Shown here: piece by piece, positions 20,546 to 59,038 of the stretch
How positions within the stretch are numbered: position 1 is the stretch's first letter
Layout of the letters: every line of letters starts with the position of its first letter
NCBI GenBank assembly: GCA_907165135.1
Contig: OU015566.1
Coordinates: 4,588,001-4,652,000 of the forward strand
Direction of reading: 5' to 3'
DNA length: 64,000 nt
Origin: Oikopleura dioica
Lineage: Eukaryota; Animalia; Chordata
Position numbers and translations under genes: made by a program
Notes under the pieces: generated by a model
Seen by the model: the letters and a program-made list of their open reading frames with translations, nothing else
Databases searched by the model: none
Told to the model about the DNA's origin: nothing

Positions 20546-20584
20546 TTCGTCAAAAATTGTCGACAAATTAAGATTTATGTCTTG

Positions 20585-20860: not shown

Positions 20861-21265
20861 AGGTTTTTCAAATTTTTTATGGCCAAAAAACTCATTTAGC
20901 TAATATGAAGGCTTCATTATGTAAAAGTTTGCATTCAAATGACTGTCAAAATGAGAAAGGAAAAGGTCACGTGGGAGAAGTTCCACCATCTGTGCGATAT
21001 TTAAAAATATGCGCGATGGGGAGACAGCTTCATACACTACTTTGGCATTTAGTTCTCCTCTTTATATCGATCGGATAAGATGGGATCGGTGAAGTGTGAT
21101 TAAGGTGATGAGGGTATTTAAAAAAGTAGTTTTTAAGAGTTTTATTAAGAATTTAAAAAGCTCATAAAAATATGCCGATCAAAAAATCTGTAAAAAACGC
21201 GAAAATAAAGATAATTTTCAAAAATATTATCAATTTTGAGGCAATTATTTTTGACCTTGAAAGTA

Positions 21266-21998
21266 CCGTGGTTTTCCATTTTAAGAGCGTTTTTTGGATG
21301 ACAGGCCTCGCTCAAATCGCTCTTAGATTGGAAATTTTTCAATCAAGGTAGGATGACAGTGGGATTTTTAATTTTTCCGTTAAACAAATTGTAAATGTAG
21401 CTATGTCATTTTCAACCCTGTGACAACCTTGTGTTCTGCAAGTACAAAAAAGATCCGATGTTTTCTTGACGATTTCATCGTCGACCATGATCATCTGATT
21501 ATCAAGGAGGAAGATCTAGTGAACAAAGCCAACGAAATCTTCATAAACATGAGTCCAGCAATCTTCAAGCGCTCTTGGATCAATACTGGGCTGATCAAGG
21601 AGGAAGAATTCGAAGGAGCTGTTGAAGATTTTGAGGACTTGGATGTTTTGGAAAGTTTGCTGGAGAAAGAAGACGAGGAAGAGCTGGTCGAGCATTTTCT
21701 GGCGCTTCAAATCGATGAAACACGAGCCGCGACCCCGATGGAGATTGAAGAGGAACCTCAAGTTCAAGTGATAGAGAGTGCCGACACTGCGAAGCCTTCG
21801 ACTTCAAAATGACCAGAAAAGCAGTGAAAGATTACAAACTTTTTTTATAAATGATTCACTGTCAGTCTGAAAATTTTTTGATTTTTAATAAAAATCTTCA
21901 AAAACGCTCTTAAAATGGAATTTTGGCAGATGACAACATTTTCAAATTATACGAAAAAACGCTCTTAAAGTGGGCGCTCTAAAAATGGAAAACCACGG
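21266..21998 (+). mobile_element. Non-autonomous Tc1/pogo-like element (copy 1) with a transposase-like C-terminal remnant
   Basis: TA|CCGTGGTTTTCCATTTT...AAAATGGAAAACCACGG|TA termini. The internal ORF 21420-21812 (..AIFKRSWINTGL followed by an acidic tail) resembles DDE_1-type transposase ends. Confidence 0.75.
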
Positions 21999-24900
21999 TA
22001 TAGAAAAAAATCGTCTGTCAGACAATTTTTGTCTGGTAGACAAAAATACTGTATTGATTATTAAAAGATTTCGAATTACCTCATTTTCTCGAGTTCTAGT
22101 TCTTCTATTCCATCAATTTTCAAGTCTCTTTATTTTTTTTGAGTTCTCGGGCTTGGCTTGTTTCTTTCTTTTTTCAAAATTTCGTACTTGTCGTACCAGT
22201 GTTCAAATTCAAGTGATAAAAGCAGCTCGTCGTTCTTGTCCGGGTGTCGGCGGTTGCGCGCGCACCCGGGATAGCGCGGCGCACCAACGCGCAGAAATAC
22301 CGTTTGCGCCACCTGTACTGTTTTTCTTCCTTCGGTTTACCTGCTATTTTGCAGCTGCTTTATTGGAATATACAAGTACAGCTTATTATTATTTCTTCTC
22401 TCCTGGGAATCGGTCTATAAAAATTTTTTCAACTCATTAATGCTCATTTCAGCATCAAAATTTTCGATAAAAATCGCAATTTTTTCCAGAATTAACCTAG
22501 TAACACCCTTAATTTTAAGATTCAATCGAAGATTGGTCGTCTTTTTACGTCAATTTATTAATTATTTAATTTATTAATTATAATAATTGATAAATTGACT
22601 TAAAAAGAGAACGAATCTTCGATTGAATCTTAAAATTAAGGGTGTCACTAGTTTAATTCCGGAAAAAAGAGTGATTTTATCGAATAATTTTTTTCTTGAT
22701 TGAATTATTTAAATTTTCCCTGCGAAAATTTTCCATCAAAATCCCCTTCTTGGCTTTTATAATAAATATTGCCCTTAGTTTTGGTCTGAAACACCCTTAT
22801 TTTTCGAACACCAAGCTAGAAAGAGAGAGACATCTTTCAGAGTCCGAATATTTTGCTTTGATCCAATCATTACCGTACTGAAAAAAACCTCATTAGCAGC
22901 GAAGCAGGCGGGGAATTCATCTTCATTACTAGCACGCGCACAGTGCCAAGACCGAATCAATAAGGAAGCCAATCTTTTGTCAATTAAAAATTCCTCTTTT
23001 GTCATTTCCAAAAATTTAAAATTCATTTGGAAGTTCCCTCCCTCGGGAAAAGACCTTTTTCTTCCTTGTTTTTGGCTTTTTTTTCAATTTAATTTTTTAA
23101 TAAAAACTTAAAAATAATTAATTTTTGGTATTTTGAATTCCATGTTCGTCAATTGAGGTGCCCAGCATTTAGTCCGACAAATCTCAATTATTCACGGATA
23201 AACCGCTTTAGCATGTCTGTTTTGGAAGCAAACATTTTCAACTCTCTGGGAGAGGCTTAGGTGAATGTCGTGTTTTTTCAACCTCTTGCCAGGCCGCGCG
23301 ACCAGTTTTTTCCTCGTGGGAAAAGATGGATAAAGACTTCTATTTCTGAAAAGGAGGATGAAAGTCAAGAACCCGCTGATTTGATTTTTGAGCTTTTGAC
23401 TTGGCAAAATTTGAGTCAATTTTTCTGATAAAGTTGAAAAAGAAAAATTAAGGGGGTAACCGTCGAATCTTGATTTTTTCGTCGAATATTTTTTGACACC
23501 CTTTAATTCAGTGAAATTAACCTACGAGCGTAGGAATGTCATTTTTCGGACCGAATCGAGGATTTCGAGAGATTTTTCTTAATAAAAATTTGTTTGCGGA
23601 TTGTTATCGCTCAGCAGGTTATCTCCAGCCTTGTCTCTTATCGCCAATCACCATCGCAATTAGCCGAGTTGCCCAAAATAGGACACGGAAGTAGGTTATT
23701 CCCTGCGTTATCGAAAATCACGCCCCGGTGCTTATCGACCCAAAGCTAGAATTTTTCCAAAATTGCAAAAACGGATCAATCTCGGATTAATTGTGGGGTT
23801 TTCAGGAAACGGATAGGAAGAGCTCTTATTGACAAAATATTGGGAAAAAACGGTTGTTTTGAATTTGAAATTGATTTCAGCCAAAATTTTGATTACCGCT
23901 TGGATACCCTTAAAAATCCTCTGGACAGAAATTTGGCCCGACTTTTCGCCTCCAAAATTTCATAATTTTTGGTCGTTTCGAAAACCATAAGCAACTGAAA
24001 ATTGCATAAGCCCCCTTTGTCATTTCCAATGTCAAAAATAGAATTTGGCGCTTCCCAAAATATATAAATACCGGTAGCAAATTCAAATATTCGATCTTGA
24101 GTTGACCTAAGTGAAGGGATAAGACGGCGTCTGCTCGGCGGGGGCTTTCAATTGAAATAAGGGGATCACCTCGTTTTGAATAAATGGGGATTAGGTTTGC
24201 TCTTTTGTTGAAATTTTACGGTATTGAAACGGCCTCGTTTTTTAGGTAGTATGTGGTAATTCGTCGGGCTATGACTCATAGCAAAGGAATGACCCCGACG
24301 AATAGGTGTGTTTTTTATCTTCAATCTGTCGGGATCGACCCCGACGAATGACTGTTATTTCATCTTTCATTTGTCGGGGCGACCCCGACGAATTACCACA
24401 GACTACGGTTTTTTAAGCAAATGAAGAAAAATATGACTCTTTTTCGAAGTAGCTACAGAAAAGTGCATTTTCATCAACGACTCCCTCTTTTGAAATAAGG
24501 GTGTCAATACGTTAGTTTCCATAAGGGTGTCCCTTATGATTTTTTGAAGAAAATTTTCGAGAAATAAGTGATCACTTCTGATCACAGTCAAAATTTCAGG
24601 CAACTAGTCCTGATAGTAGTATATATCATAGCATAGGGTGGTGTCACGTGGCTTAGAGATGTCCACTTGATAAGATGCGCGGATACTTTATGGTGTTAAT
24701 TTTACTCGATCAAATTCTTCGAGTCGAGGTTGTCAGAAAGAAACCATGTTCTCAGTGATTTTAGAGAACTGTATAAAGAAAACTGGCGCGTTTCCAAAAT
24801 ACAAACTCGTTTCCACCACATTAGAGCAATCCTGCGCTAAATCTGCTGAAGCGCATCCTTTGAAGATCACGTGTTCAGTGTTGTTTCGCTGTTTATGCTT

Positions 24901-26195
24901 TCTTTTTTGCGCTCCAAGGTTTTGTGTTTTTGTTTCAGCTGTGATAGAATCAATGACCTTTTGACCAAATCACCTGAAATTAAAACCTTATTTTGCCCGA
25001 TTTTGTGAATAAAAAATGACATTTCAAATTTCCATAATTCGGAAAAAAGGTACTCGAAACGCTTTGAAAGAGCCGAGTATGTTCAGCTTAAGACTGACGT
25101 ATCTAAAGATAAAAAATGCATGTTTGGGATGATGAAAAAGCGCAGGTGACTTTTGATGAAGCAAAAACCATGTCTTATATGAAAATTCAGCGGTCAAGCT
25201 TGAATTTCGTATAAAAGCGTAATAATTTCGTAATAAAGCGGTGAAGAGCTTTAAAAAACTCTACAATTTCAAAAATATTGCATAGTATTTTTTCGGCATT
25301 TTCAGTCGTTTTTCAGTCGACGCATGTCTAGCCATTCGCATGGTGGCACTTATTTTCGCATTATCTCAAGAAAATGTTTTTGGGGGGCTTGCGCAACTTG
25401 ACTTCTGTGAACGAGAGAGACAGCAAATTAAGCCGCATAGAAATGCGCCCCGTGTTTGTCAAAAATGTTCAATAACATCTCATTTCAAAGCGTCGTTTTT
25501 TCAATGTTTTTACCAAAATTTTATTTATGGGTAAATCTCGGACCAGGCAATTACTACGCATGCAAATTTTAATCAAACTAGTTTTTGATCAAGAAAATTT
25601 ATTATTGGCTTTTTGGCATCAGATTTTTGGGGAAATAGATGAAATTTCGTAATATTTTTGAAGCAGTACCCTTGATTTTCCGAAATCCTCGTTGTTTCTA
25701 CGAAGGATTTTTCGGACTCACTAAAAATTTTTGATAAAGCGAGCGAATTTATTAGGGGATTTCAAACTGTGATAATGTTGCTCGTCAATTTTTATTTTTA
25801 TTCGAATTTGAACAGTTCCTTTGAAAATTTTAATAAAAAAAGCTTCAGAATATCTTCAAAGCAGTATTAGAAAATTCCCTTATAAAAATTGCGCAAACAT
25901 AATTTCCATTTTTTTTTCTTTTAGACAACGTGGATTTTGTCTCGCGGATTCGCAATAATCTCCAAAAAGAAGCCTCGTTGTGTTTTTCATCGTTATGCTG
26001 ACGTGCGGTGGTGGTGGAGGAGAGCACCACCTAGGTTACGAAATGCGTATTTATGCTCGGGTTACTGGCGGAAAAATCATTCACCAGAGAGAAATCATCC
26101 GATAATGAAGGTAAAGCAAGATTTCGGAAACAATAAAAAACCAATTATTTTTTCAGTAAATGAGGAAATCGATTAAGCATTTTGTTTAGATTTCA

Positions 26196-27871
26196 GCCAG
26201 CCTCATCGCCTTGACAAACTTGGCCACGAATGCTGCCGCCAGCTCGAAAAAGAATCCGACCAATGCCGTCGAAAGCATCGACGCTCCCAGAACCGTCTGT
26301 GGCGGCCTTATCACTGGCGACGGCATCATCACCTCTCCTGGATTCGACGATCCAGGACACTACGAGAACTACCTCGACTGCACCTGGGAAATCAACATTC
26401 CCGGCGTTTCCGGCTTCACGATTCACCCCTAGTATTTCGTCGTCGAACAAGAGCGTTATTGCTCCTACGATTCGCTGACCATTACTTTCGGAAGCTCGGA
26501 ATTCACTTTCTGCGGATATGACGATGCAGATTACGACGATAGTTCTAGCTACAGCTTAAGCAGCTCCGGAAGCTCCGGCTATACCTCAAGCTCATATTAC
26601 AGCTCCAGCTCAAGTTTAAGCTCGAGTAGGTCCGGAAGCTCTGGCTACAGCTCAAGCTCAAGTTCCAGCTCATATTCTAGCTCAAGCTCAAGCTCTGGTA
26701 GAAAACGAAGAGCTCCAGTGGAGGGTGTCCTTGGCGCCTCAGGCAACGGAAGAATTGATTCTTCTAGCTCCCCATACCTTGGGGACTTCCTCCAGCCTCT
26801 ACGGGTTAGAAATGACTCATACGGTATGAGTCATACCGTATGAGTCATACGTTCGTCTTATTTATTTTTTTCTTCGTTAGGTAGAGGGAAACACTGCTAC
26901 ACTCCACTTTACAACAGATGGATCTCGTGTTTTCAAAGGATTTAAGCTTCGAATCGAGAAGGACAACAACATCGGAGAAACGGGATGTGACCAAGTCCAA
27001 TCCGGCTCTGGATCTTTGAGCAGTACGAATCACCCGGAAAATTACGGAAACAATGAGCTTTGCAGGTAAATTAATCTTTGCGGAATTCTAGCTCTCATAA
27101 ATACCTGGATATACTCTGAATGCAGAGCCAGGAAAGATAATCAAAATCGACTTCGAACACTTTGACGTCGAGAACAACCGAGATTGCGATTACGACTCCC
27201 TACGAATCAACGGCCGAAAACACTGCGGTAGAAAACAACATGGATTCGGCAACAAGCGAAATCCACCGCAGACCGTTTACGTTTTTGCTGAATCGACCGA
27301 ACTTGAGTGGATCACCGACGGCTCCGTGACCAGAGGAGGTTTTGCTCTTTCCTGGGAGTCTGTTGTAAATCCCAATGGATCTGCTGCTTCTGGTCCTTTG
27401 GAAAGCGCCGCTGGATTTCATGAACATATGGAGGTGAGGAATAAAAGGCTATTTAGAGCAGGGCTCTGTACTGAGTCAGGGTCTGAAATATCGATTGATT
27501 GATTGGATCTTATTTTTAAGTCTTTCTACAACCAACTCATCTACCAAATGGAATTCCGTCGGCCCTGGATGTCCAAAGCCCTGGCTCGATTCTGGAGCAA
27601 CATCCAAATCGCCAAAGACTACTTCCAAAGCGAAGGAGAATGCGAATGGGACCACGCCAAGCCTTCATACAACACATTCGATTTCAAAGAATTCGATGAT
27701 TCCGCCTCGAAATGCGACAATTTAAACAATTTCGCAACAAATGCGAACGCGTTTCTGAACAATTTCGTGTGCATGGACGGTCATGAGCTTCCGAAGAGAA
27801 CATGGATGAAATGGAAGAATTCGGCTTCGAAGATTTTTGACATCGGGTTTGCTTTGGCAGACCATTGTTAA
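26196..27871 (+). CDS. Two-CUB-domain protein with a Ser-rich insert and an in-frame TAG (possible null allele)
   Basis: CGGLITGDGIITSPGF..YENYLDCTWEI, CSYDSLTI..FCG, GN..LHFTTDGS..GF, and a second CUB (CDYDSL..CG..WITDGSVTRGGF). TAG at 26430-26432. Confidence 0.8.
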
Positions 27872-28048
27872 ACAACTTTTCCTGCCAAATGTACAATCAT
27901 CGATTATTCATTAATAAAATATAATTTTGAAAAATTCAATTCTCTTTCTAATCAGCATTTTTTATTGATAAAATTATAAAAAACAAAACAAATCAAAGAA
28001 AATGAAGAAGATCGAATTTTGATATAAATATCATGATCAGTATCATAA

Positions 28049-30100
28049 TCACAAGATAGAACATGCTCTTGATCTTTTTTTCTTCTTCGGATTCTTTTTC
28101 GTCGGCGCTTCCTCCAGTTTTTCGATTTCTTCGAATTCGACCGGCAAAGGCTCCTCTTTGATTTCAGTAATCGACGAAATTTCTTTCGGAATGAGAGTGA
28201 GAGTGTATGCTTCTTGGAAGAGATACCATTCATCAAATTGAATCCGTCCATTCGCCAAATTTTCGTCAGTAAAATAAGGGTTGAACTGAGAAATTCGAAT
28301 CACTAAAAGACTGGCTTAGATTCTCTGTAAGGTTCAAAATTTAAGACTTGGAGAGTCAGCTGAGAATTCATTATTTTGGAGAACATATTCGTTGTTTTCA
28401 ATTCGGTCCATGGTCATTTGGTGATAAAACGTTCTTTCGTAAAGATGTTCGCTATCTCGGGGAAAAACCATGGCGGCTGTGACTGTGACCGGTCGAGTGA
28501 ATTGAAATTGTTCGCCCAGAATAACTGAATTTTAATAAAGGATTTATGTTTTGTTTTTAAGCTTTTTTATATCTGCAGATTGATTCAACAGGTTTTGGAT
28601 TATAATCTTCTGGTCCACCAAGAAGTCTGATAATATCCCAGCCACTTTCCATCAAATAAGTTTTCTGACAAAGTCGCTTCAGAAGAATTTCGATTTGATT
28701 GATTTGTGCCTGCTTTTCTTCTTTATTCGGGTTCAAATTAAGCCCAACCATGCTTCGTGGATAAACGATCATCGTCAGAGTTGACAATATGTTTTCAAAT
28801 GAATGAGTAGGGTATTTATCAACAAAACCAAGATCTTTCTTGATCGCATGTCGTAGAAGCGTCGTAACAGAAATCGGCACGCAAAGCTGACTGGTCTTTT
28901 GATCGAAAATATTTTTTGTTAAATTTTTCATGTCTTGGTTGGCACATTTTGTGATGTCTTGATTTAAAGAAGACATTTGGCAGGATGTGGTTAAGTTTGG
29001 ATCGTCGAGGCAGAAAGAAGAGTCAGCATCGTCTAAGTCGATGATTTTTGTGATTTCATCGAAAACTTCAAGGCTTCCATCTTCGATTTTATGAACTGTC
29101 AACGCATTACAGCTCTTAATTGCAAAATTGTTAATTTTAATAATTTCATTTATTAACTTTAACAAGCTGATCGATTCCACTGCGCTCTTCGTCATCAATC
29201 GGTTTATAAAGCAGCGACCAGGTTGTTTTCCAAGAACACAAGAAAAAATACCAAAGATTATCGATTCTGTAACCTTGACCATTTGTCAATTGACTTTGAA
29301 AAGAAAAACCGGGCAAGCCAGCAGCTAAAACAAATTATTTTCTTACTTCGAGGTTAACTTACAAAGAGAACAATTAATTCTATTTTTTGACCCTCTTCTG
29401 CAGTAGCCCATTTGCCTGTAACCTTCTCTTCCTGTCAATTCGTAAACGAGGCCGAAATCAATGATTCGAGGAACTCCATCAAGCAGAAGAATATTTTCCA
29501 ATTTAAAATCAAAGTGATTGATTCCAATTTTCTTCAAATAAACGAATCCCTTCGAAATTTCCAATCCGATTCTCTTCCGCTCATCAATGTCAATTTTTTT
29601 TTCTTTCAACAAACTTCTTAAATCTTTTTCCGCTCTCTCCATTATTGTGATCCATCCAAGACAATCTGCTTGCTGCTCATCGACTAAGAAATATGTTTTC
29701 GAGAGATGAATCTGATTGCAAAATCATTCGATGAGTTGAGGTTTGCTCAAAGCTTTCAATCTCTTCTTTGTTTACATCAAAAATAAATCCTCGGTCACCG
29801 ACAAAACCACAATATTGCCAGTGATAAGCATTTCTATCATCTTCAAAATCCATCCGTTCAACAGCCGAGATCAATCTGCATTTCTGAGTCCTCGTTGTTG
29901 TCCTCTTCAATTTCGGCAGAAATCCAGCCAGCCATTCCTCGATCTTATCTCTTTCAATCTCGGGCGGATGATCATCAATTCTCTCATTATCCATGATCGC
30001 AGAATTCCGTCGAAGTAGAGCCAAAATCCTGCATTTAAAGAGTCCTTCTTTTTCGATGATATTTACGTTGCTATCGTAAAAATAGCGCTAACAGATATTT
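28049..30100 (-). CDS. Divergent protein kinase fused to an additional C-terminal domain
   Basis: MERAEKDL..HFDFKLENILL..IIDFGL (subdomains V-VII) in ORF 29343-29642, with flanking exons at 29677-30024, 28557-29282 and 28049-28303. Confidence 0.75.
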
Positions 30101-30594
30101 TCTTCCGTTTCTGACACATGGCCCAGTGATGCAACAAAGTTTGAAATTGATGAAAGAATGGCTCTTTTTCTTGCGAGTTCAATTCTTTACAAAAAGAACC
30201 ATTCTTTACAAAGGATGGAACCCCCTCTACCATTTTAAGGTGACTGTCAGCTCAGTTTAGCTCATCTCAATGATTCTTTGAAATGAGCCAGCTCAGCTCA
30301 GCTCAAAAAATGGCCAGTTTAGCTAAGCAAGCGCAGGTTGTAAAATCCTCAGCTGAACTCAACAATTTTCAGAAAAGTCTCAGCGCAGCTCATTTATTTT
30401 TTGAAAAAATCAGCTTACTTTTGAAAGAAGCCAGCTCAACTCAGCTCAGCTCAATTTCGACCTCAGCTCAGCTCAGAAAAATAAAACTCAGAAGATAGCA
30501 ACTCTACCCTGAAGTTCTGCTAGTTTTTTCATTTTAGCCAGAAAATAACGGAGCATTACCTTGTCCACCAAAAGGTCATGTTTTGTTAAAAATA

Positions 30595-31328
30595 CCGTGG
30601 TTTTCCATTTTTAGAGCGCCCACTTTAAGAGCGTTTTTTCGTATAATTTGAAAATGTTGTCATCTGCCAAAATTCCATTTTAAGAGCGTTTTTGAAGATT
30701 TTTATTAAAAATCAAAAAATTTTCAGACTGACAGTGAATCATTTATAAAAAAAGTTTGTAATCTTTCACTGCTTTTCTGGTCATTTTGAAGTCGAAGGCT
30801 TCGCAGTGTCGGCACTCTCTATCACTTGAACTTGAGGTTCCTCTTCAATCTCCATCGGGGTCGCGGCTCGTGTTTCATCGATTTGAAGCGCCAGAAAATG
30901 CTCGACCAGCTCTTCCTCGTCTTCTTTCTCCAGCAAACTTTCCAAAACATCCAAGTCCTCAAAATCTTCAACAGCTCCTTCGAATTCTTCCTCCTTGATC
31001 AGCCCAGTATTGATCCAAGAGCGCTTGAAGATTGCTGGACTCATGTTTATGAAGATTTCGTTGGCTTTGTTCACTAGATCTTCCTCCTTGATAATCAGAT
31101 GATCATGGTCGACGATGAAATCGTCAAGAAAACATCGGATCTTTTTTTGTACTTGCAGAACACAAGGTTGTCACAGGGTTGAAAATGACATAGCTACATT
31201 TACAATTTGTTTAACGGAAAAATTAAAAATCCCACTGTCATCCTACCTTGATTGAAAAATTTCCAATCTAAGAGCGATTTGAGCGAGGCCTGTCATCCAA
31301 AAAACGCTCTTAAAATGGAAAACCACGG
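30595..31328 (-). mobile_element. Non-autonomous Tc1/pogo-like element (copy 2, inverted, near-identical to 21266-21998)
   Basis: Reverse complement of copy 1 with the same TIRs, TA flanks and an identical ORF translation (30781-31074). Confidence 0.8.
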
Positions 31329-31383
31329 TATTTAGTCAAACCGTTTCCAGAAACATGATCGTTTTTGAACGATTGGAATTATT

Positions 31384-33097
31384 ATGAAAGACGCAATTTG
31401 TTCATTGATGTTTGAAGTCCAAACACTTCGTGTTCCTGACTCTCTGAGCCACTTTCTCCCAATCCAGAATCGAAAACGGTACTAAAAAGATCACGATTAA
31501 AAATATTTGTTTTTCAGTTTTTCTTCTTTTTTCCTACTTTTTGGTCGGTTATTTTTCGTCGCATGGATTCGACGAAATTGCGAAAGAGCTAGAGAGAAAG
31601 AACAACGGCTGTAAAAACGACGTAAAAATCGGAGAACCGGGGCAATTCAACTGGATTCTGATTCTTTCCGTTCAAGGATCCGGGAACACCTGGACGAGGC
31701 AGCTTTTTCAGTCGCTGACGGGCTACTACGCGGGAGGAGTCTATCACGAGATTCATGAGGCGCTCGATACTGACGAATTATACGAGCAATCGCCCTTTCC
31801 CGGAGAGCATTTTTCTCCTGAGTCTGGCAGAGTTTTAGGTAAAGAGAGACGTTTTTTCGTGCTTTTTTTGGTGTCAGCCAAAGGTGAAAATAAATTATCT
31901 TTATGAAACACGCAGAGAACTGTTACGAAAATAGTTATGATGGCGTTAACACGTTACGTTATTAGTACCAAGTCATTGAATTTAAAACTAAGGGCGTAAT
32001 TGAGGATTATTATTCCTCGATCAAGCTTTTAACAATTTTTGATCCGAAAAATAGTTGGGTAAGAAAAGGGTTCACGATATTATTCCCATACTGACGCACT
32101 TAATATATTTTTCGTTTGGAAAATTGAGACCAAGAGCTAGAGAAATAGGCGCATGTTTGTTTTCCTTTTTTTAAATCATCTTTTATTTATCCTTATTCGG
32201 AAATGACAACAATTTCGAGAATATCACGCAATAATAAATTGCTCTTGGTTGAACGAATATTTAGTGAAAACAAAAACTTCCAAACGGAAAAGCCAATCAG
32301 AGATGTCAAGTGCTCAAAAATGTTGTCAGCAATGTTTTCATAGATAAATCATACATGCCTAATCATATAAAAAAATCATTTCAAGAATCGAATTGACTTT
32401 ACTAAAGTCTTTTTTTTCAGGAATCAAGTCGCACGCTCGAGGACACATCCGAAAAGCCCACGCCGTCGTCCTCGTCATCCGAAACCCCTACGACACCATC
32501 AAAGCGAATTTCAACCGAATCATGGCGCAAAAAGAAACCGGCGACGGCCATGGCGCGCACACTGGCACCATCGACCCAGCGCTCTTCAAATCGCTAAAAT
32601 GGCGACGATACATTCACAACACCGCGGAAATGTGGCGACAGTACTACAAAGACGCGGTCCATCTGGCTGTCAATAGCGAGAAAAATTTTCATTTTCTCTG
32701 GTACGATTTGCTGAAAACAGAAAAAGAGGCGCAAATGCGGGAAGTTTACGCTTTCTTGGAAAACGAAGCGGTTCCAAATGAAAAATTCGAAGTCGAAAAC
32801 ATCGACGAGCGATTAAATTGCATCAAAAACGATAATCTGGACAAATTTAAAAGAAAAAAAGTTGAACTCGACTTTGACATCTACAAACCAGGTAAAATTG
32901 GCCAACGCTCGCTTTGTTTTTTATCAAAAATATTTTATGAAAAAAAATATGGAGCACTTGATCAATAATGAAATTGGCTTGACTTTGTTTTAGATGAAAT
33001 AGAGATGATCAACTCTTACATCCGAGAATATATCGAATTCTTTCGCGAAAATGATGTTGAATTTCCAGAAAAAACTGTCAAAAGCTGGCTTAGATAG
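31384..33097 (+). CDS. WSCD: WSCD-like sulfotransferase-domain protein
   Basis: SVQGSGNTWTR (5'-PSB loop), TGYYAGGVY, KSH, LVIRNPYD..ANFNR, and RLNC..FKR. Multi-exon. Confidence 0.8.
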
Positions 33098-33967
33098 CAG
33101 ACCCTTAATTATTTTGTTCATTGAGTTCACAAAAATAAAAATTTTATATAACGCTCAAATCGAAGTTATTCGCTTAAAAAAAAAATTTATTCTTTAAAAA
33201 AAAGGTTGAGATCCTGGCTCCGCAACCTGTGTTGAGAATCTGAGTCAGGGGTTTATATCAAGAATCGGATTTCTTGTCAGTGTTTTCTCAAATTTTTAAC
33301 ATAGTGACCCCGTTATTTTACTGCTCAAAATTTATTTCAGACAATTTTCTCTTTCCTATCGAAGCCAAAAATTTGGACTTCTTGAGCTTTCGAGGTGCTA
33401 CAATGCAAATCGGGCATCTCCGAATGTCGTCAAAAAGCCTATTTTAGGAAAGTCAGCGATCTTTGACGAAAAATTTTGTTAAAAATTTTCTTGAAAATCG
33501 AAATTTCGGCTTCCATAGGAAATAGATACAGGTCTAAAATTTTTATTTCCAAAGTAAAATAAGGGTGTTACTATTATAACTTTGGGAGAAAATTCTGACG
33601 GAAAATCACGATTCTTGATATCTACCTCCTTAAAAAGCTTTGAAAAAAATTTGATGAAAAGTGAGTGTTTTTCGAAGCCAATGACTTTTGACGCCAATCT
33701 GCAGCATCGAATCCGCTGCATAATGCCTGTAATCCAGCGATACAAATGCATAGAACAAACATCAATTCAGAATAGAAGTACTAAAGGCCAGTTTTATAGA
33801 TAGAAAACAAACACTTCCCCCATTACGAAAGGAGAATAAATAGTGAGACAGAAGTGAGAATTCAGACACATTCCTTCAATTTCTTCAATTCATCAATTTT
33901 TCTCTAATTTAATCGGAAACCAGAGGCGCTGGAGAAATTCAAGACAAAAGAAAAAAGTTGAAAAGCG

Positions 33968-34998
33968 ATGGAAAAAGAGGCCGAAAAAGAGGAAAAGAAG
34001 GAAATCGAAGAAATCAACGAAGAAAGCGGCAAAATCAGCTGTTCAAAAAGAGTCGGAAACGCGAAGCGAATCGGGATATTTTTCCTTCTCAATGCAGTTT
34101 TCGTCGGAATCGGGACTTTTTCCTTCCACGCTTTGGAAGGCCCAAATGAAGACAAAATCTGCGCGGACTCCCGACAAGCGCTGAAGAATTTCACCGACTC
34201 GCTGATCAAAGAGCCGGACGGAACTTACAAAGTTACAGACGAGCAGCTTCTCAATTTGGTCAAAACTGCGGAGATTTACGCGGAAGAAGGGGTCCCGATT
34301 TCGACCTTGATCGACCCGGAAAACGAATGTCCAAAGTTGTGGACTTATGGCGGCGCTGCTTATTTTTGCGGGACGATTGTCACGACTGTTGGTTATGGAG
34401 ACACAGCTCCGAAGGTTTGAGAGCTCTAGAAAATTGAGGAAAAAATTTTTTTAGACAAATGAAGGAAGACTGCTGTTTTTGTTTTATGTCATTCCGGGAA
34501 TCGCCATTTGCGGCGCTCTTCTTGGCGAAATCGGACTTTTGGTAATTTTTTTCTTATTTTTGAAACAAAAAAAAAGACGATTTTTAGATGGCGAATGTTT
34601 CCTACAGAACTCGAAAGCGGCTGAAAAACGTCCCGACCGCTCTGTTTTGGACGCTGAACAGTTTGTTTGGAATTGGATTTTTGATTTTTCTCCCTTCGCT
34701 GATAATTTTCCTCAGCGTTGAAGAGTGGACGTATTTTGAGTCGCTGTATTTTATGATGGTGACTTTCACGACAGTTGGTTTTGGAGACTTGACCATAACA
34801 GCTTATGATTGGAAATATGCGATCATGTTTTTCAGCTATCTTGGGTATTTGAGATTTGATTTGATTTTTGATGATTTTTGAAGACTCTCTTGGATCGGTT
34901 ACATTATTGGGACCATCACTGACAGCGTCAGAAATCGACTAGCAGCGGACAAAAACGAAGAAAAAGACGAAGACGAAGAGATTTTCTCTGAATTTTGA
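33968..34998 (+). CDS. KCNK: Two-pore-domain potassium channel (K2P)
   Basis: Two pore loops, TTVGYG and TTVGFG, four TM segments and a cap-domain Cys. Three short introns. Confidence 0.95.
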
Positions 34999-35166
34999 AT
35001 GCAAAACTGATAATTGACGATGATGATGAAATAATAATTTGACACTTTCAACGCTTTTCTTTTTCGAGCCAAAAGCATTTTGCCAACCGAAAATGTCACT
35101 ACTTGACATTTACTCCCGCGCCCACGCTGAGCTGTAGTACCAGCCGGTTTTCGTACATTTTTTAAA

Positions 35167-36318
35167 ATGATGAAGAATGATTCAAACAACAAAAAGCTCC
35201 TTCCTCTTTTTCTAGCGCTCTTGGCCATTTTTCTATTTGACAGAGTTTTTGAAAAGTGCAAGGTTGCTGTTTATGACAGAGAAACACCGATCGTTTTTGT
35301 CGGAGGAGTCAAGGGCTCTGGGACAGAATACATTCGCGACTTACTGAACACTTCAAAAGACATCAATTGTCAAAAATCAACCATTGGTTCTCCAGCCCTC
35401 TTATGGATGGCATTCAACGAACTGCGGCGAGAAAAGGAAATGAAGCGACTTCATCTTGCTGGAATTTCTGAAGAGTTGATGTTCAAAGCCACTGGCGAGG
35501 GAATACTAGAAATCGTCTTTGGAACAAGGCAGGCGAAGATTCCTTGTTTGGAGGAACCGATGATTTTGAATCAAATGGAGTTTCTGGCGGAGAGTTTTCC
35601 GAATGCGAAGTTTTTACGGACGATGATAGACAAACTAATAATTGAAAAATTAAAATATTTATTATTTTATTCATGTTTCATCATCATTTTTGAGATATAA
35701 AACGAAACGCTTTTCAAGTCGCAAATGCCCTCATCAACGACCGGGAAAACATCTACCAAACCGACGCAAATCCGCCTGTTTTAAAACTCTCCCGCTTCCG
35801 AGACGGCCTGGTCTACTGGAATGAAACTGTAACAGTCGTAGACGAGTACTGTAAAAAATACCAAAAGCGATGTCTTACGATCGAATATGAAAATCTCCTC
35901 GACCATTCCAACGCGATCGCTAGAAAAATTGGGCAAGAACGAGTCTTGAAGTTATTTTTAATGACTTTTCTTCAGGAAATTCTTGAAAACAGATCTTGAC
36001 AAAAGCTGGAAGCCAAATCCGCTCAAAACTTTTTCTCCCAAAAACCGCGGCGCTTCAAAAGAGCTCAAGAAAGTGCTCCAAACTTATGGAAAAGAACTGA
36101 CTAATCGAGCATTCTTCCAGCTCGCGAATTTTGGATGGGAAGACAATTTGAAATACGAGGAAAATTTTGAATCATTCGAGAAGCCGAATGCTGAAATGAC
36201 AAAAAAAGAAAAGGAGATTGTAAAAGAACTCGTAGAAAATGTGAATTTGGATCGATATCAAAATATATTGAAACTGAGTAATTATGAAAAACTCATTCGA
36301 TTTTACAGAAATTTGTAA
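35167..36318 (+). CDS. TPST: Tyrosylprotein sulfotransferase-like protein (catalytic residues altered)
   Basis: Type II TM anchor, YDRETPIVFVGG..SGT, RL..AGISEE and FPNAKFL align with TPST by recalled sequence. Confidence 0.75.
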
Positions 36319-43550: not shown

Positions 43551-44197
43551 ATTTTCTGAATCGTGCAGCCTACGTATGATCCTCCTTATTCTCTATCGCT
43601 GTTGTATCTAGGCAAAATTCATTATTTGAAATCTCGAGCTTGTTAAACCCCATTCTATTCTGTGCTTTTGTTCATCTCAAACTCGCGTGCAATATAACTT
43701 ATATTTCCAAAAGATATCTAGTATAAGTAAAAGTTACGACTGTAAAAATTGCCAAATTATTTCGTCGCCGGTGAGTTAATATATACGGTGTGTACCATTC
43801 TATTTTCAGTTTATGTATCTTCAACACAGCTGCTCGCATGATCTTTTAGACTTACCTAATACCGAAAGGAAACAAAAAGGCATGAAAAACGTACTTCGCT
43901 TTCTTTCTTTCCAAGTTCTAGCTTTGTAGTCTGACGCCTAAATAATTGAACTTCTAGCTTCTTGAGCGCAATTCAACTGTAAAAATTCCTTTCTATACCT
44001 TTATTTTTTAGGCATTGAAAAACGAATTCAGAAATACGCAAAAATCCTTTTCAAACTTTCATGATAATTTTCTTTTATTGGAACTCAGTTTATTAATAGA
44101 TACAGGCTATCGGGATCTCCTTGACGACAAAGAACAACTGCTTAAATCAGGCGCATACACAGAACAAGACCAAGTCATCCAAGAAAACTCCCTCATC

Positions 44198-45874
44198 ATG
44201 CCTTCAAAGTGGCAAAATTTAAACAAGACGAGACTGCAAAAAGAGTGCAAGGACCGCGGGCTTTCAGTCGCTGGCAAAAAACAGGATCTCCTGTCAAGGC
44301 TTTTGAAACATCATGAAAATGATGAAATAAAAGTCAAGAGGTCATCCAAAGGCGCGTTTATGAAACGGCTAAGTGGATGCGACACCGAAGAGATTACTCC
44401 TGTGATGATATGTTATGCGCAGCTCCCCGAGATCAACCGACATTTATCTATAACGCCCAGCACTTTTGTATGCGTTATACATTTGACGTGTGCAGAAGAT
44501 GGCAGTGACGTGCAGACTGACTTTATGATTGAAAGAGCCGACCTTTGGGATACCCGAAACTACTATCACTCACGAAGGCACTTCACCAGCCTCAAGACAG
44601 CCCCACAAATCAGAGCACGGGTGTTCCCTGTTGCGTATTATCGATCAGTTACGATGAACGAGGAAACGCGTAATCATCGAATGACGAGAAAAAACACAAA
44701 GATACTCCGAAAATTCAAGCCTTTGCATATAAACGATCTGTTGTCACACTCTTTTTCGGTTTTGGGAAAAAGCAAAGAAGATCAAAAAATCAAGGAAATA
44801 TACGATTCACTACCGCCCGTGACCAACTCTCTCTTCTATAAACGATTAAATCGCTCGATGGAAGATTTTAATCATGCCTTCTCCGGCAATATTTTTTTTG
44901 CAGTTCTGATTTGTCTGTTGGTGATTTGCCGGGAATCGATGTATGACATTTAAATTGTTATAGCATTTTGATATATATTTTAGGAATTACAGGATTGTTT
45001 GTTCGACGAGGATGATCCATCTGAGGACGAGGGTGATGACGATGACGATCCATGGTACGTCCCGAGCGGCGCCTCTGATAATGACGAAGGTTTAGTTGAA
45101 ACTGTATTAGAATCGTTAGTAACATAATTTCAGATGGAAAAGGCGAGAAATCCGACACTCCATCAGGGGAGGAATCCGCTCAATCGACGGAGGAATCCGA
45201 CCCTCCATCGGAGGCGGAAGACTCCGATGCTCAATCGGAGGACGGCATTGAGCCGGAAAACGAAGAAGAGCCCGCTCCAAAAGTCGCAAAACCTTCCGTT
45301 GAAATCGAAACAGAAACTGAAAAGAAGGTATGAAAAGTTCTGGGTCCAATCTTGACTTGAGTAACAGTTTGAAAAGCCACAAAACTAGTATTTCCCGGAA
45401 AGCAGCTTTTTTTTTCTTGAAAAATACTAATTCAACTATTTAGGGAGGCGAGAATAAAAACGAGAGTTTAAATGCTACGAGTGCACCGATTCCTCTTGTT
45501 CTTCAAGCGCCAGCTGTTCCTTCTAAAACGAGTGAGCCCTCCAAACCATTGTCGAAAAAGGAGAGAAGAAAAAAGAGACGACGCGAGCAAAAGCCTCGAC
45601 TTCGCTCGACAACATCGAGAAAATATAATAAAAAAGGTTTGAAGTTTTCTTATTTCAATTCATTAATTCTGCTAATTAAGAGAACTCTGGCAACGACGCC
45701 GATTCTGAAGACGCTGACGATGTTCCTCCTCCAGCCCCCAAAATCGCCAACCTCGACTTCGACCCAAACGTCCCGGGGCCATCCCGGTTCATCAGAGCAT
45801 TCGTGGAAAAAGTAACGGGGCCATTCAAAAAACCGCAAAAAGGCTACGAAGAAGTTGGATCAGACAGTGATTAG
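44198..45874 (+). CDS. SAP-domain protein with a long acidic/basic low-complexity C-terminus
   Basis: LNKTRLQKECKDRGLSVAGKKQDLLSRL is a SAP motif. Open exon to ~44885, then acidic exons ending ..EEVGSDSD*. Confidence 0.7.
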
Positions 45875-48395: not shown

Positions 48396-49478
48396 ACATA
48401 GTGTACTATCGATCACGATTTCTTCTGGACCGATCCTATGCCTTGAAGGTACCTACCATTGAAAATCTCAACTCACAAATTCCTAGAAACGCTAAGCAAA
48501 CTTCACAAATCGCTCTTCGACTTCTCCGAATCACTTCCTCAGCAAATGAAATACGCCCAGCATTCCGCCGCGATAAAGCCCGCTTTTACCAGACTTATCT
48601 ATCGAGTCTTTTGATTCTCAGCAAAAGTTCATTCAATTCTTCGCTACTGTAAATTGTTGCTTCAGTAAAACAAAAAAGCGAACATAAGAAACATTATCAT
48701 TGATAATAAACTTGACAGATACAACCTCAAAACTTTCTATAGAGTATATTTACACAACTTTATAAATAGAAAGACAAGATCATATCCATTTTGGCAGGTT
48801 TTCATGACTCTTAGATGCCCTAAAACTTTTTCTATTGAAACTTTTAAAACTTGCCCCCCAGTTCTTCGCGTTTTTCTTGGATAGCGTTTTTTTACATCAT
48901 CAAATCAATTTTCAAGGCATCCAAAAAGCCTTTGATGAATCTGCCTCTTTTTCTTCGCTAAATTTCTTTCCTGCGCTTTTAGTTCAATATCAGTCGGAAC
49001 TTGATCCCCCAAGAAGACGGAGATAATTCGCATTCATTAATAAGTGTATTTGAATTGCAGTACAGTGTAATCGCGATTGAATAATTACTTATTCAGCTTC
49101 ATTTGATTTTAAGAAAAATAATGTTCAAAATTGCTCTCTTTTTTTTACTTGCATTTGAATCATTTTCAAAAAGTACTCATCATGTTTTTCCTGCAAGTTA
49201 TAAAAGCCCCACTCACCAAAAGAGGGCGTCTAGAGCAGCTATTTTTAGAGCTTTTATATCCCACCAAGAGGTCACGCTATTTTTAGTAACATTTGGTTCG
49301 ATTTGCCTAGGACTTCGCCCCTTCCTTGGTCTAAATTCTATTCGCAATTAAAGTCGAAAAGAATAATACAAGATCAATTGAAATTTTATTACAGCTTTTT
49401 TGATTTAATAACTATTTGGATTGACAGGAAAGTCTCATTGTTTGGGACGTAGCTCTTCTGCATGCTAAGCGATTTAAA

Positions 49479-50464
49479 TTAACTTGATCGTAGATTTTGT
49501 CTTACTGGAAGCATCTCCTTGTACATTTGATGGATGGTAACTTCAGAAACACCAGTAACGTCACTGATTTCCTTGGCGGTTTTTCTTGTTTTTGATGTCT
49601 GAACCTCAAGAAGTTGTCTCAAATATAACTTTTTACCTGTGAGGCCATGTAAATTGCCGCTGCGGCAAGAGAAATCGGGGATCTACCTTCTGCCAAATCC
49701 AACTCGACGGATCGCTTGGCAATTTTAGTTGAAACAGCCTCGACTTGCTAAACAAGCGAGATATTGAAAAATTGATTGCAAAATATACTTTTGTGAGGTT
49801 GAGCGAAAAGCAAAAACGCATCATGAAGTCTTCTGACGAGATAGTTTTCACAGTTTTTTCGAGAGTTTTGATGATCCACTTGAAGCAGCGACCAATTTCT
49901 TTCTTCGAAACCGTACAAACAGCGCAGATTTCCTTCAGATCAATCAGGTTTCGATTTATTCTGATTATACCTTGAATGTGCGCGGAGCTCCTATTTGTCG
50001 ACAGGCAACATAAAGACAAGCTCCGGCGATAGCTTCGTGTGACTTTTGTCCTGCTTGATCGTAAATTTCCTTGAAATTGACTTTTGCCTGATCCAGAACT
50101 GATCCAGAAATATTCAAACGATGAGCCATAGCCCTTGATATTGTAACTTTTGCTCAAATTATGATTTTGTTGTACTCAATATTTCGATATGCCGCTAGAA
50201 GGGCTCGATCAGTAGCGTTCATGCGAGCTCGGTACTCCTCGTTGACAGTTCTCAGATCAGTCGACAGATATCGGTTTTCAATTTCACCGACTCGGGAAGA
50301 TCTCCATTCACTACTTTCTTGTTTTTTTTTTTCAAATTCTACTCAAACCTTTTCACATCAATCATTCTGTCGCCCACAACGAGTCCGCATTCAGTGCAAA
50401 TTACATCGCCTGCTCGGTAATCGTCAACTAAAGCTGCTCCTGGATGATACGGACATTCAAACAT
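49479..50464 (-). CDS. GTF2B: Transcription initiation factor IIB, intact ORF with in-frame internal deletions, 5 introns
   Basis: Zn ribbon [66 protein letters not shown] and [17 protein letters not shown]. Confidence 0.92.
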
Positions 50465-50598
50465 GCTGAAAAAAGAGGCGACATGATTCAAAAAAATTAG
50501 TTTATTTCATTCATTTTGCAGAGGAAAAGTGGTGCACAGGATAAAAAAAAACATTAATAATGTTACATTATTCTTCTTTGTCTTCGTTGTTGCTCTCT

Positions 50599-51006
50599 TC
50601 AGAAATCGTAGTCGTGTCGAATCTCGCCATTCATCAAGGCCTCTCTGATGAGCTCGTCCCGGGCTTCTGGCCAGTTAAGCGGTCGCTCAATCAGCATGAT
50701 GTCTGGATCGTTGAGGACGATGATCTCCATGTCGTCGTCGCTGGAAGAGATGATGATCACTTCATTGTCATCGCTGATTTCGATAACAGAGGAGTCGCTT
50801 GAGTCGGCGTCGTGATCGTGCTCGGTGTCGTTTTGCTCGGCGTTTTGTGTGTAGTCTTGACAGTCGCAGTCCATGTCATCAGAAGGAGGAGGGGTTGGAT
50901 TGTAGTCTACGGTCTCCAGAGAGACGTCGAGGTCAATGTCGACGAGTGATGGCGATTGAGCCGGGTAGACATACATATCGGAATCGGTTTCCCAGCGATC
51001 AGACAT
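50599..51006 (-). CDS. Acidic protein with tandem SUMO-interacting-motif-like segments
   Basis: Intronless ORF MSDRW.. containing VIEISDD, VIIISSSDDD, EIIVLND and DIMLIE. cag|aATG start context. Confidence 0.7.
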   Translation of the reverse strand: MSDRWETDSDMYVYPAQSPSLVDIDLDVSLETVDYNPTPPPSDDMDCDCQDYTQNAEQNDTEHDHDADSSDSSVIEISDDNEVIIISSSDDDMEIIVLNDPDIMLIERPLNWPEARDELIREALMNGEIRHDYDF

Positions 51007-51094
51007 TCTGGTTTGAAGGTTTTTGTTTTCTTGAAAGTAGAATTTTTTTTTTGACTGAATGACCATTTTTGGGTGTGGTTATATTCAGAAGCTC

Positions 51095-52324: not shown

Positions 52325-55300
52325 TTAGAGAAGTTTACCGTCCTTTGAAAGTGGAGTGCACGTTATCTTATCGTTATTTACATACAGTTTAAAAAATACA
52401 TCGCTAAGAAGTCTTTTTGATGTAGAAGTTCGGCAAACTAAGCCGTTTGAAGGTTGACGCCGCAGAGCGGTCAGCTGGAACTTGTTTTCTTCAAGATTTA
52501 CTCCCTTGAGGCAATTCAGCATCGCTTCGAATTCGATTTCAACATTGTGTGGGATACCTTTTGATGATCGTTTGTTCACATCTTTTTCAGGATCAATTCC
52601 AAGATATAATTTATTTCCCAAAGCAATAAGAGCGCCGGATTCTGTTGACCATTCCGCTGAAATGATTTAATCTCTCTTAGTTATTTCGAAAACGCTCACT
52701 TTTCATAAGACCTGGAGTCTTGTCATTTCGCGTTGTATCTTCAATAACAAACCAATCTTGCCATTCCCGGAGAAACGCTTTTCGGAGATGCGGTTTGACA
52801 ATCGGCAGAAAGGTCGATGCAGTCTTTGATTTTCGAGTCTCTCCGGATGGAGCAGTCTTTGTCGTTGCTATCAAAATTTTAAGGGGATAAAAGCAAAGTT
52901 ATCTTACATATAGCGAGACTATCAGTATCGCAGTAGTTGAGCTTGAAACTGCCTTTTTCGAGATATTTGTGGAGGAAATCGTAAACGAATCTTAAAAAGA
53001 GCAATTTCGATTGCTGCAAAATGGCAACAGCCAGCACGACAGGCTTGTCGTCAAGAATCTTCGCTTTCTCCATCGTCACTTGAGAAAGCTCGTAATCTCC
53101 ATCTTCTCGGGTGAGCGGCTCCGAAAATTTGTAGTGCGGTTTCTGAGCTGCGCGCGCGACTTGATCCTCGTTGCAAAAATTAACTCGCGGACGATCCACA
53201 ATTTCCCCCATCTTTCCATACCCGCTTATTTGAACATAATTAACTACAATTTGAAGACGGCTTACCAATTCCCAACCGTTTTAAAAGCATTAGCAAGAGC
53301 GGCTTTCTTCTTCAGAATTGATTGTATGCGTCCCTCTGTGATCGACTCGCAAAATTCTCCAAGGCATTTGTCCGATCTATACTGTACAAATCGAGACACG
53401 TTCGAGATTTTTAGACCAAGAGACATGTAGAACTTGGCGAGCTTTGTTAAAATCAGCAGCTGCTTCCCATTGAAAGTCTGGACGACTGTCTCTTGTTCGA
53501 TCTTTCGATCTGCCATCTTTGCTCTTTCTTTCATGTAGGGCGAAACCAAATCTTCAGTTATTTTCATCCTTTGGATCACTGGCGGGAAATTCATGTGCTT
53601 GATTTCCGATGCGATGTCTTCAGGTGTATTTACATCGGCAACAATGAATCCAAAAACTTGATCATTTTTGATTTCATCAAGAAGATCACCCTCTGTATGT
53701 TGCTGGTACATTTTTCCCCAATGGCGAGAGCGCATCCGGATGTTCTGCTGTTTTTTACGTTTCCAAACGCATTCATGGATGAAAACAAGCGTGCCGCGTT
53801 CCATCAAGACATTTTTCTTTCGTTCCCAATTCTCATCAGCTTCTCCAGGCTTGCAATAAGGACAGCAAGAATGAAAAAAACAACCAAGAAACTCAAAAAA
53901 GTATTTCTTCTCGTCAACACAAGCGTATCCATCTATTGTCCAGTCAAACACTTGGAACTCACCGCGATAATATTGATGTTGAAGAGGAACACGTTCGCCA
54001 TTCTTCGAAACAAGTAGATCACTGTATTCATCAATATACGTAAGCCATTCCAAAGCCACCAGGCTGTTTCCTTTGGCCATAATTTGCTTACGGAAACTAT
54101 CACCTTCGCGAATCCAGCGTATTCCTTAATTTAAATTCTAAACCGTCGAACAATGATGATTACCTGGAGTTGTTGGCATTTCTTGATTTTGAGCATAAAG
54201 ATAGAGCGCATTGAAATCAAGAAATGTTATCTTTGTGAATCTGTCCCCGTTGGGCGCGTACTTTGCATTTTTCGGAGCAGGAACATCATCTCGTAGTTCA
54301 GTATATCGCGAGAAAACATTGACAAGGCCGCCGATAATGTTGCTGCGAAACAGTTCGTGTTCTTCAGTGCTCGTTATGCCGAAGGAGTCTTTATATATCT
54401 TAAGTCAAAATAAAAAATCAACTACTTACATGAAAACGGAGCTGTCTTTGAGTAGTAATTGAATAAGCAAATCATCGCATATTTCGGAAGGCTAAAGCAT
54501 AAAGACGGGTCGACTTTGAAAGCTTTAAAAAAGACTTTGAATTGAGATTCAATCGCTCTGGCAAATGGATTGACGTCAAGCATGTTGTAGTTCTGGAGCC
54601 AGTCGACCATGGAAGTTTGAGGGTTGTTTCTTTTCATTTCTTCAAATTTTCCTTTTTCTTCCAAGTAAAGATCGTGATCAATATTAACGTTCTTTAAATG
54701 AGAAAAGAAGCAGTCATAGTCGGGAAATTCGTGGCAGGTTTCAATCTCCGAAATTGAGTGAAACAGCTCGTACGGCCAGATTGACTTTGTTTCGCCGATT
54801 CCTGCTTGTTCCAGGTACTTTGCAAGTCCGATCGGCGAACCAAACAGCATGGCGTCTTTGAAAGCAAATTTATCCGTCGAAATCGAAAAGAAAGACGAGC
54901 CCTTTTTGATAACATTGAATGATTTTGAGTATCTTTTCTGCAAAAGAGGTATCAAATAAGGAGCCAAGACATTGCAGTCGAATTTGGCGGAGTTAAAGCC
55001 GTAAATATCCATGGAACAGTAACGCTTTAGTTCGTTAAGCAGAGACTGCAGCTTCATCTTTTCTTTTAGATTTTCTTCTTGAAATAAGGTTTTAGTCTGT
55101 AAAAAAAAATGTTTCTTACCGCTGTTGGTGAGTCCGTAAAGTTTTTCAAGAGCAACTGAAAATGCGGGTGGAAGAGACATTTCTGGCGACATGGTCAACC
55201 CTTCAATTGTAAGAACAAACTCTTCTACCATGTTCTCGGCATGAATTGATGAGTCTCCTTTACGCATGATGAACTTGTCGAAGCCAAAATTTGATCCGAT

Positions 55301-56355
55301 TCCAATCGACAAAAGTTTCAAAGATGAATGAATTTCAGTTTCTTGACGTTTATCTCCGAGTGGGCTCTCATAAGTTTCAATATCAAAAGTAACTTAACAT
55401 TATTATTTCAACTTATTCAGGCACGGCTTACCAAATTTCGTCTTTCGAAAAGACTTGTATTTTTCTTCGAGGAGTCCCAATTTTACTAGCTCGCTGATCG
55501 GATTGATATTCTTTCCATATGCTTTGAGAGTCGGTTCAATTTCTCGATTGGCTCTTTTCCTGCAGATAGCTTCATGTGCATCGCGAGTGTCAGCTTTTAC
55601 GAAAGTCATATTGCAGTTTGTATTGCTACATCGGTAGATATTTGACTTGAACGCTATAAATATGTCAGGAAAAGTCTCAAAGAAATTTTAAAAAAACCAT
55701 TTGTGTTGTAGACAACAAAGATTCGCGAGGGCTCATCTTTTTTCACAAACAAGTAAAGCGGTTCCTCGACCTTGGGATTCTTGACCCGAAATCGTCCTAT
55801 TCTTTGAAAGGCGACTCGCTTCTTCAATTGAAATTGATTCGAGTTTGTGTAGAGAATGATTTCACGCCTGATTTCTTTAGCAATGGTAAAGTAATTATCG
55901 GGAGAAAAAGGTCCATGATAATTGAAGAATTTGAGATCCGGCATTTCAATAGCAAAATCTGCTATTCGTTCAAATCGTTTTTCCATCATCTGTAATGATT
56001 TGACCAGCATAAAGTACGGAATCGGGTGGAATAAAACTTTTCCATTTGAGACAATCTCGTAATAGCAAGTCTTTGGTGACCAGAATGCCTCAAGCGTGAA
56101 TTGGTATTTCCCAGTTTTGTTTTTATCGTAAGCTTTTTCTATTTGAATAAATTTGAGGGTATAATGCTCTTCGAATTCTTGTTTTGTTGACAATGGACAG
56201 TCCCTGGAGAGATTACGAACGTAGTTTACAAAACCGGCGCTTGTAAGTAATCCATCGCTGTCAAAAAATATCTGGTAAGGTGTCTCTGAGCGTAAGAGTT
56301 CCCCAATTATCAAAAAAGGGGAAACATTCTCTACTGTTACATTGAATTTTCTCAT
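52325..56355 (-). CDS. polB: Protein-primed family B DNA polymerase, 8 exons
   Basis: Zn-finger-like CSNTNC..HEAIC, ExoI VTFDIET, ExoII GFNSAKFD, RSNIIGG..VFSRY, motif A DFNALY, motif B KTVGNCGYGK, motif C YCDTDS and KTPGLMK.E. Introns at 55654-55697, 55393-55431, 54389-54429, 54125-54163, 53225-53265, 52868-52907 and 52657-52699. Confidence 0.95.
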
Positions 56356-56566
56356 GAGAGTCTGAGCTTGAGAGATGCTTTTATTGCTAGGAAATAAGGT
56401 CAATTGTATCACCAGTGTTTATTGATAAAAGATTGGGAGCAGTCAAACAATAGGAAAAAGGTCAAAAGTGGCAGAAAAGAAAAGAAATCGCAAGAAAAGG
56501 AGTAACAAAAAAGGAGTGAGAATAAGAAGGAATGACAGAAAAAAGTGTTTCGTGGAGAAGAGTTTA

Positions 56567-57326
56567 TCATTGTTTCTTTGCTGGTGTTTCTAAATATCAT
56601 CAGTGTTTGAAAATAAAGAAAACGCTTACTTGGAAAGAGTCGTCGAGGCTTCATTCGTCTTGGAACAGGATTCTTTCGTTTGATTTTCCTTGCAGACTCG
56701 ATAGGGTGCATTGTGTGAGCTGTCTCCACCATTTGTTCGAGAACAACGTAGTCAGAATTGGATGGTTCAGTGGATCCTTCGAAGAAGACCTCGAGGTCAT
56801 CATCGCTCGGTATGTTGATGGCAATTGATGAGTTCGATGTTGCGTGAAGCCGTTCAAATCTAGGAACGACCATTTCCACTTCAGTTTGAGTTGATGCGTC
56901 TCGCATAATAGGCTCGTCCTCGTTGTCATCGTTACATTGCTCGCATTGACAGTCGTCTTCAGACATGGCAGAGCTGGAGTCGTCGGAGCTGTATTGCTCG
57001 GCGCTGTCTGCTACGATTTGCCCTGGTAATGGAGCCCATTCTGGATCAGCGGTCATGTCGGAGTCCGAAGAGTGGAGGGAGACGCTTTCATCATCATTAT
57101 CAGCAAGGATCATGTTCTCAATGAGTTGAACTCCATCATTATCGAAGTCGAGATTGTCTGCAAGCTCTCCTAAATGAAACTATAGAAAAGGTTTGAAATT
57201 ATCTAACTCACTTGTTAGTTTGTTGAAGTCATCAGCGTATTCAACTGGAACATGATCGGCTTCCTCAGCGTACTCGAGTGCTATTTCATACAATCGGAGA
57301 TTGTAAATTTTAGAAGTAGCAACCAT
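56567..57326 (-). CDS. Acidic disordered protein ending in an NLS-like basic stretch, RRLF and TPAK
   Basis: Two GT-AG introns join MVATSK.. / RELADN..MILAD.. / KTPAKKQ*. Contains CQCEQC and RDASTQTE. Confidence 0.6.
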
Positions 57327-58748: not shown

Positions 58749-59038
58749 TCTAAATATGTAAAATGATTAATTCTTTCCCTTTGACTTTCTTCTAATTTCG
58801 TTAACGTTCGTCAGTAGTACAAAAAACAATCGTCATTCTTATACAGTCTACATTCTTATACAGTCGACATTCAATTTACCCCGCCAAGTTCACCGCTTAT
58901 AGAGCTATGCAATATAAATGGTCAAAATGACGGGGGAAACAAACTTCCTAAAGGCGGGCTTCTTCTCGGTTGGTAGGAGTGGCGGTCGGCTGCTGCTCAG
59001 CGGCTAAAATAACACTAAGTTGCCATATAAATTGAACT

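Follow-up and report, generated by a model that had tools for sequence, protein, structure and literature searches.

The window, that is the whole stretch of 64,000 nucleotides of DNA analysed here, encodes on its minus strand a homolog of the transcription factor TFIIB, designated type B to distinguish it from the canonical TFIIB (type A) described below. Exon limits were set from GT..AG sites together with the reading frame (Table 1), searches with the gene were run one exon at a time, and all TFIIB lengths were obtained by adding up the codons of the individual exons, which gives 263 codons for type B. Exon 1 affiliates to the Pfam family Zn_Ribbon_TF (PF08271; 2.6e-11), exons 3, 4, 5 and 6 match the TFIIB repeat (PF00382), and alignments to solved structures placed exons 1, 3 and 6 on defined parts of the human protein. 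For exon 2, no TFIIB match was obtained in Pfam or the PDB. These assignments bear out the zinc ribbon and the two cyclin repeats described in an initial annotation of the locus. The same annotation reported neither stop codons nor frameshifts; none was found in the exons, all of which are open.

Table 1 Features of the type-B TFIIB gene and its upstream neighbourhood; the sister copy is the colinear relative on metagenome contigs L001 and L002
Feature	Position in window	Strand	Remarks
Type-B TFIIB gene, ATG to homologous TGA	49435..50464	minus	7 exons, 6 introns of 38-42 nt
Exon 1	50349..50464	minus	Zinc ribbon, C-H-C-C ligands; exon residues 3-37 aligned with human TFIIB 14-48
Exon 2	50176..50310	minus	B-reader/B-linker remnant; EWR and SRVG kept; in-frame deletions of 10, 3 and 14 residues relative to type A
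Exon 3	49971..50133	minus	First cyclin repeat, first part; exon residues 2-54 aligned with human TFIIB 124-178; 2 residues fewer than type A
Exon 4	49789..49932	minus	End of first cyclin repeat and inter-repeat segment
Exon 5	49637..49747	minus	Second cyclin repeat, first part
Exon 6	49506..49598	minus	Second cyclin repeat with helix-turn-helix; exon residues 3-30 aligned with human TFIIB 266-293; His at the position of human R286
Proposed exon 7	49435..49464	minus	9 codons and TGA; splice position common with type A, stop kept in sister copy
Acceptor TTTCAG, candidate trans-splice site	50466..50471	minus	Two bases ahead of ATG; kept in sister copy
AATAAA 3' of the TFIIB stop	49385..49390	minus	Kept in sister copy
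Acidic 'poly-SIM' ORF	50599..51066	minus	Three SUMO-interaction-like motifs; no relatives, no family
AATAAA of the upstream gene	50501..50506	minus	Kept in sister copy
Family-B polymerase-like stretch (tentative)	52879..55321	minus	Two motifs in the right order, over three ORFs

Relatives were sought in the whole library with exon 3 as the query. The best match, P0001 (89% identical), is encoded on marine metagenome contigs that do not exceed 1.5 kb in length and include one from PRJEB4352. These sister contigs, L001 and L002, align colinearly with positions 50508-49061 of the window (1.45 kb, 87% nucleotide identity) and share both flanks of the gene as far as the short contig extends. The next matches, P0002 and P0008, led to the loci L003-L006, which encode type A, a TFIIB of 314 codons (counted exon by exon) in which reader and linker are complete, the introns are short and the ATG is immediately preceded by an AG acceptor. 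All six intron positions and phases are common to type A and the window gene, and the resemblance of the window to L003 extends over the TFIIB exons and no further. Type B shares 72.9% identity with type A and 59.3% with a bird TFIIB, and type A and the bird protein share 67.3%; these values fit a recent, lineage-specific origin of type B followed by acceleration.

The initial annotation counted five short introns and closed the gene at 49479; six introns were counted here and the earlier stop is probably intronic, with its TAA (49479-49481) falling within the intron ahead of the proposed exon 7. This predicted last intron of 41 nt runs from a conserved GTAAGA donor at 49505 to a TAG acceptor ending at 49465, both of which match the last intron of type A in position and frame. 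The 41-nt model was preferred over a read-through and a 48-nt intron, as the canonical gene has the corresponding donor, acceptor and frame. The homologous TGA stop then lies at 49437-49435 and is also present in the sister copy. Like the last intron, the trans-splice site in Table 1 is a prediction from the sequence. The C-terminal tail is short under either model of the 3' end, about 13 residues shorter than that of type A, as the earlier description of a clipped tail implied.

The main departure of type B from the canonical protein lies between the zinc ribbon and the cyclin core. Only 1 residue separates the EWR and SRVG motifs in the window, compared with 4 in the sister copy and 11 in type A, which agrees with the collapsed B-reader noted earlier; the shorter linker noted at the same time corresponds to 3 + 14 residues that are present in type A and missing here. 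In addition to the three exon 2 deletions of 10, 3 and 14 residues, type B is short of 9 residues at the N-terminal end, 2 in exon 3 and 13 at the C-terminal end, and it has neither a B-reader helix and loop nor a B-linker of canonical length. Both the B-reader and the B-linker are regarded as indispensable for choosing start sites and opening promoters. A further change affects the helix-turn-helix, in which V283 and R286 of human TFIIB are BRE-contacting residues: codon 49530-49532 in exon 6 specifies His in place of R286, as it does in the sister copy, where type A has Arg, while the counterpart of V283 is still Val. A shortened linker was also observed in P0129, a full-length TFIIB of 297 aa, and shortening of TFIIB may have arisen more than once.

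Comparison of the window with the sister copy by the Nei-Gojobori method, summed over exons, gave Sd 35.5 and Nd 24.5 over ~254 codons, corresponding to a dN/dS of ~0.19 (0.19-0.20; binomial p ~1e-9 against neutrality). Every exon is open in L001 and L002, all GT..AG sites are kept, and the sole coding indel is one of 9 nt in exon 2. The introns are unevenly conserved: three of the six, at 50134-50175, 49933-49970 and 49748-49788, reach 92-95% identity with the sister copy, which is more than is seen at synonymous sites, while the first and fifth introns share only 54-79%. Two lineages of type A, 86% identical at the DNA level, differ by 0 amino acids in 161 codons at a pS of 0.28, whereas type B shows in the same exons a pN of 0.04 at a pS of 0.21 (Fisher p 7e-5 versus type A). 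Judged by these substitution counts, type B is evolving much faster than type A, and the constraint acting on it is most likely relaxed but real.

Upstream on the same strand, the stop of the acidic ORF (50599) is separated by a gap of 134 nt from the ATG of TFIIB (50464). This gap, the AATAAA at 50506-50501 and the AG acceptor two bases before the ATG corroborate the operon-like geometry that had been proposed for the pair. The canonical TFIIB of L003 is arranged in the same manner, starting ~100 nt after the stop of another gene (L003 2100-2210) with an AG acceptor abutting its ATG; hence, the tight spacing is a trait of the genome and not special to the window gene. The upstream gene had also been called viral-type, a designation not upheld by an acidic ORF that has neither relatives nor a family match. 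A word search recovered no relatives of this ORF or of the SAP-domain ORF located elsewhere in the window. Hydrophobic, SIM-like runs flanked by Ser/Asp occur in three acidic minus-strand ORFs (50599-51066, 56409-57113 and 61566-61805), among which no similarity was detectable.

About 13 kb of further minus-strand ORFs upstream gave no Pfam, PHROG, PDB or phage match. Within them lies the polymerase-like stretch, whose motifs were read with short textbook patterns as regular expressions and represent a lead only. It contains at least two interruptions, either breaks or short introns. Four relatives of the polymerase-like ORF were found, all unannotated metagenome proteins; a profile of these four had no match in the PDB, tblastn against phages gave none, and two AlphaFold models (pLDDT 45 and 30) were too poor for a fold search. 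Neither a Walker-A nor an integrase pattern was found, and Rfam gave no match in the window.

Elsewhere, the window is a normal gene-bearing region occupied by ordinary host genes, with pieces of such genes at 7588-8457, 16855-17478, 32393-35700 and 44015-44953 (nucleoside hydrolase, MGAT4, two sulfotransferase-like ORFs and the SAP-domain ORF). A unit of ~10 kb at 21261-31333, bounded by ~740-bp inverted repeats that are 99-100% complementary and containing ORFs without Pfam match, looks like a recent mobile element. It is adjoined by a tandem array of an 18-nt unit in about 12 or more copies (20526-20829). Two direct repeats ~700 bp apart and 75-86% identical (58832-59801) lie near a collagen-like Gly-X-Y ORF.

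Type B is probably a lineage-specific paralogue of the host's canonical TFIIB that is kept by purifying selection, the two genes presumably residing in one genome. Both types were found as pairs ~86-87% identical, as would be the case were both genes present in each of two sister species. The ordinary host genes in the remainder of the window likewise favour a host paralogue. Their source samples are different, which would also suit type B as the sole TFIIB of a fast-evolving species, with types A and B being orthologues in different organisms. Such an orthology is improbable: type A shows no amino-acid change at the larger synonymous distance, while type B has changed at ~4% of its non-synonymous sites and varies in reader length, and, to our knowledge, a sole TFIIB bereft of its reader loop would be without precedent. 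Most improbable of all is a young host pseudogene, the alternative offered in the initial annotation. Its degraded reader and tail, and introns that are in part as conserved as the exons, are what a decaying gene might display, but neither lineage has a stop or frameshift, the sole coding indel has a length divisible by three, and none of the marks of a pseudogene or retrocopy (neutral evolution, disabling changes, intron loss) was encountered in a gene that keeps six introns. A dN/dS of ~0.19 (p ~1e-9), open exons and conserved splice sites disfavour decay; as read from its sequence, the gene is intact and under purifying selection, and so no pseudogene.

The position of type B, on the same strand as and in line with ~13 kb of ORFs without cellular homologs, speaks against a plain host paralogue in that it fits carriage by a mobile element too. 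A Polinton/Maverick-like element might have taken up a host gene with its introns, and the reader-less version would then bias or block Pol II initiation. Besides the common strand and tight spacing, such cargo would be in keeping with a duplicated segment that comprises the TFIIB gene alone, with upstream ORFs of no cellular family, one of which has only unannotated metagenome relatives, and with the two polymerase-like motifs in the right order. Mavericks have moreover been reported in Oikopleura, an organism of the same gene style (PMC5240408); introns of roughly 40 nt, the acceptor abutting the ATG, the tight spacing of genes and the marine metagenome relatives would suit an Oikopleura-like host. 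Nevertheless, we consider element cargo unlikely. No pair of inverted repeats encloses TFIIB or the 44-64 kb part of the window, although a partner could sit beyond base 64000, and the neighbouring ORFs match no viral family. Among the hallmark genes, a protein-primed polymerase, integrase, capsid, ATPase or protease gave no match in Pfam, PHROGs, the PDB or phages, leaving the two polymerase-like motifs, and the missing Walker-A and integrase patterns point the same way. The equally tight geometry of the canonical L003 gene and the two flanks shared with the sister copy, to the limit of its short contig, are further arguments against it. The capture by a virus put forward in the initial annotation finds no support in a gene that has six introns in common with cellular TFIIB and is closest to type A (73%) and to no viral TFIIB; no search returned a named viral relative. 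That a virus-like mobile element carries a host-derived, intron-bearing and reader-stripped TFIIB under selection, to take over or blunt Pol II initiation, is a distinctly doubtful proposition. The redirection of, or competition in, Pol II initiation that was proposed along with it is a reasonable suggestion and holds equally for a plain host paralogue.

Compared with known systems, type B resembles metazoan TFIIB (GTF2B; type A, L003-L006) in its zinc ribbon, EWR/SRVG motifs, two cyclin repeats and six introns at 73% identity. Relative to type A, it is smaller by 51 codons (with a reader loop of 1 residue instead of 11, a linker shorter by 17 and a tail by 13), has His for Arg at human position 286 and shows much faster protein evolution. 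The TFIIB-like factors of giant DNA viruses have the same ribbon and cyclin-fold architecture; unlike them, the window gene is closest to the cellular TFIIB of animals, the introns of which it also has. A precedent among animals is offered by stalk-eyed flies, which possess rapidly evolving, testis-expressed TFIIB paralogues; these, like the window gene, are lineage-specific extra copies that evolve faster than the parent gene (PMC4824122). In contrast to type B, the stalk-eyed fly protein P0083, which was among the matches obtained here, has a full-length reader and linker. Sulfolobus TFB3 is an archaeal alternative TFB without the conserved B-finger; like type B it is a TFIIB-family paralogue with a ribbon and without a reader, and it works beside the main factor (PMC6101591). 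Most of the core and the helix-turn-helix are missing from TFB3, whereas type B has both cyclin repeats, and the likeness is one of analogy rather than close kinship.

As a host paralogue, type B would have originated in a marine animal of compact genome, by a DNA-level duplication that copied the TFIIB gene with its introns and nothing else. It probably forms a two-gene transcription unit with the acidic ORF, in which it is the downstream member. In TFIIB, the zinc ribbon docks on Pol II and the cyclin folds bind TBP and DNA. With the ribbon retained, type B would still dock on Pol II, and with both cyclin folds retained it would still bind TBP and DNA. It may thus enter pre-initiation complexes and handle start-site selection and promoter opening differently: the reader stump, the shorter linker and the His at the R286 position could lead to a different start or opening of promoters, or to competition. 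Type B might serve a special class of promoters, a tissue or a stage, or compete with the canonical factor.

Were the gene borne by an element after all, this class of elements would have its first example of such a factor. As a paralogue, type B would add TFIIB to the general factors that animals have duplicated for special programmes. A natural TFIIB that lacks most of the reader and linker, retains ribbon and core and is under purifying selection in two lineages further represents a natural test of what these parts do.
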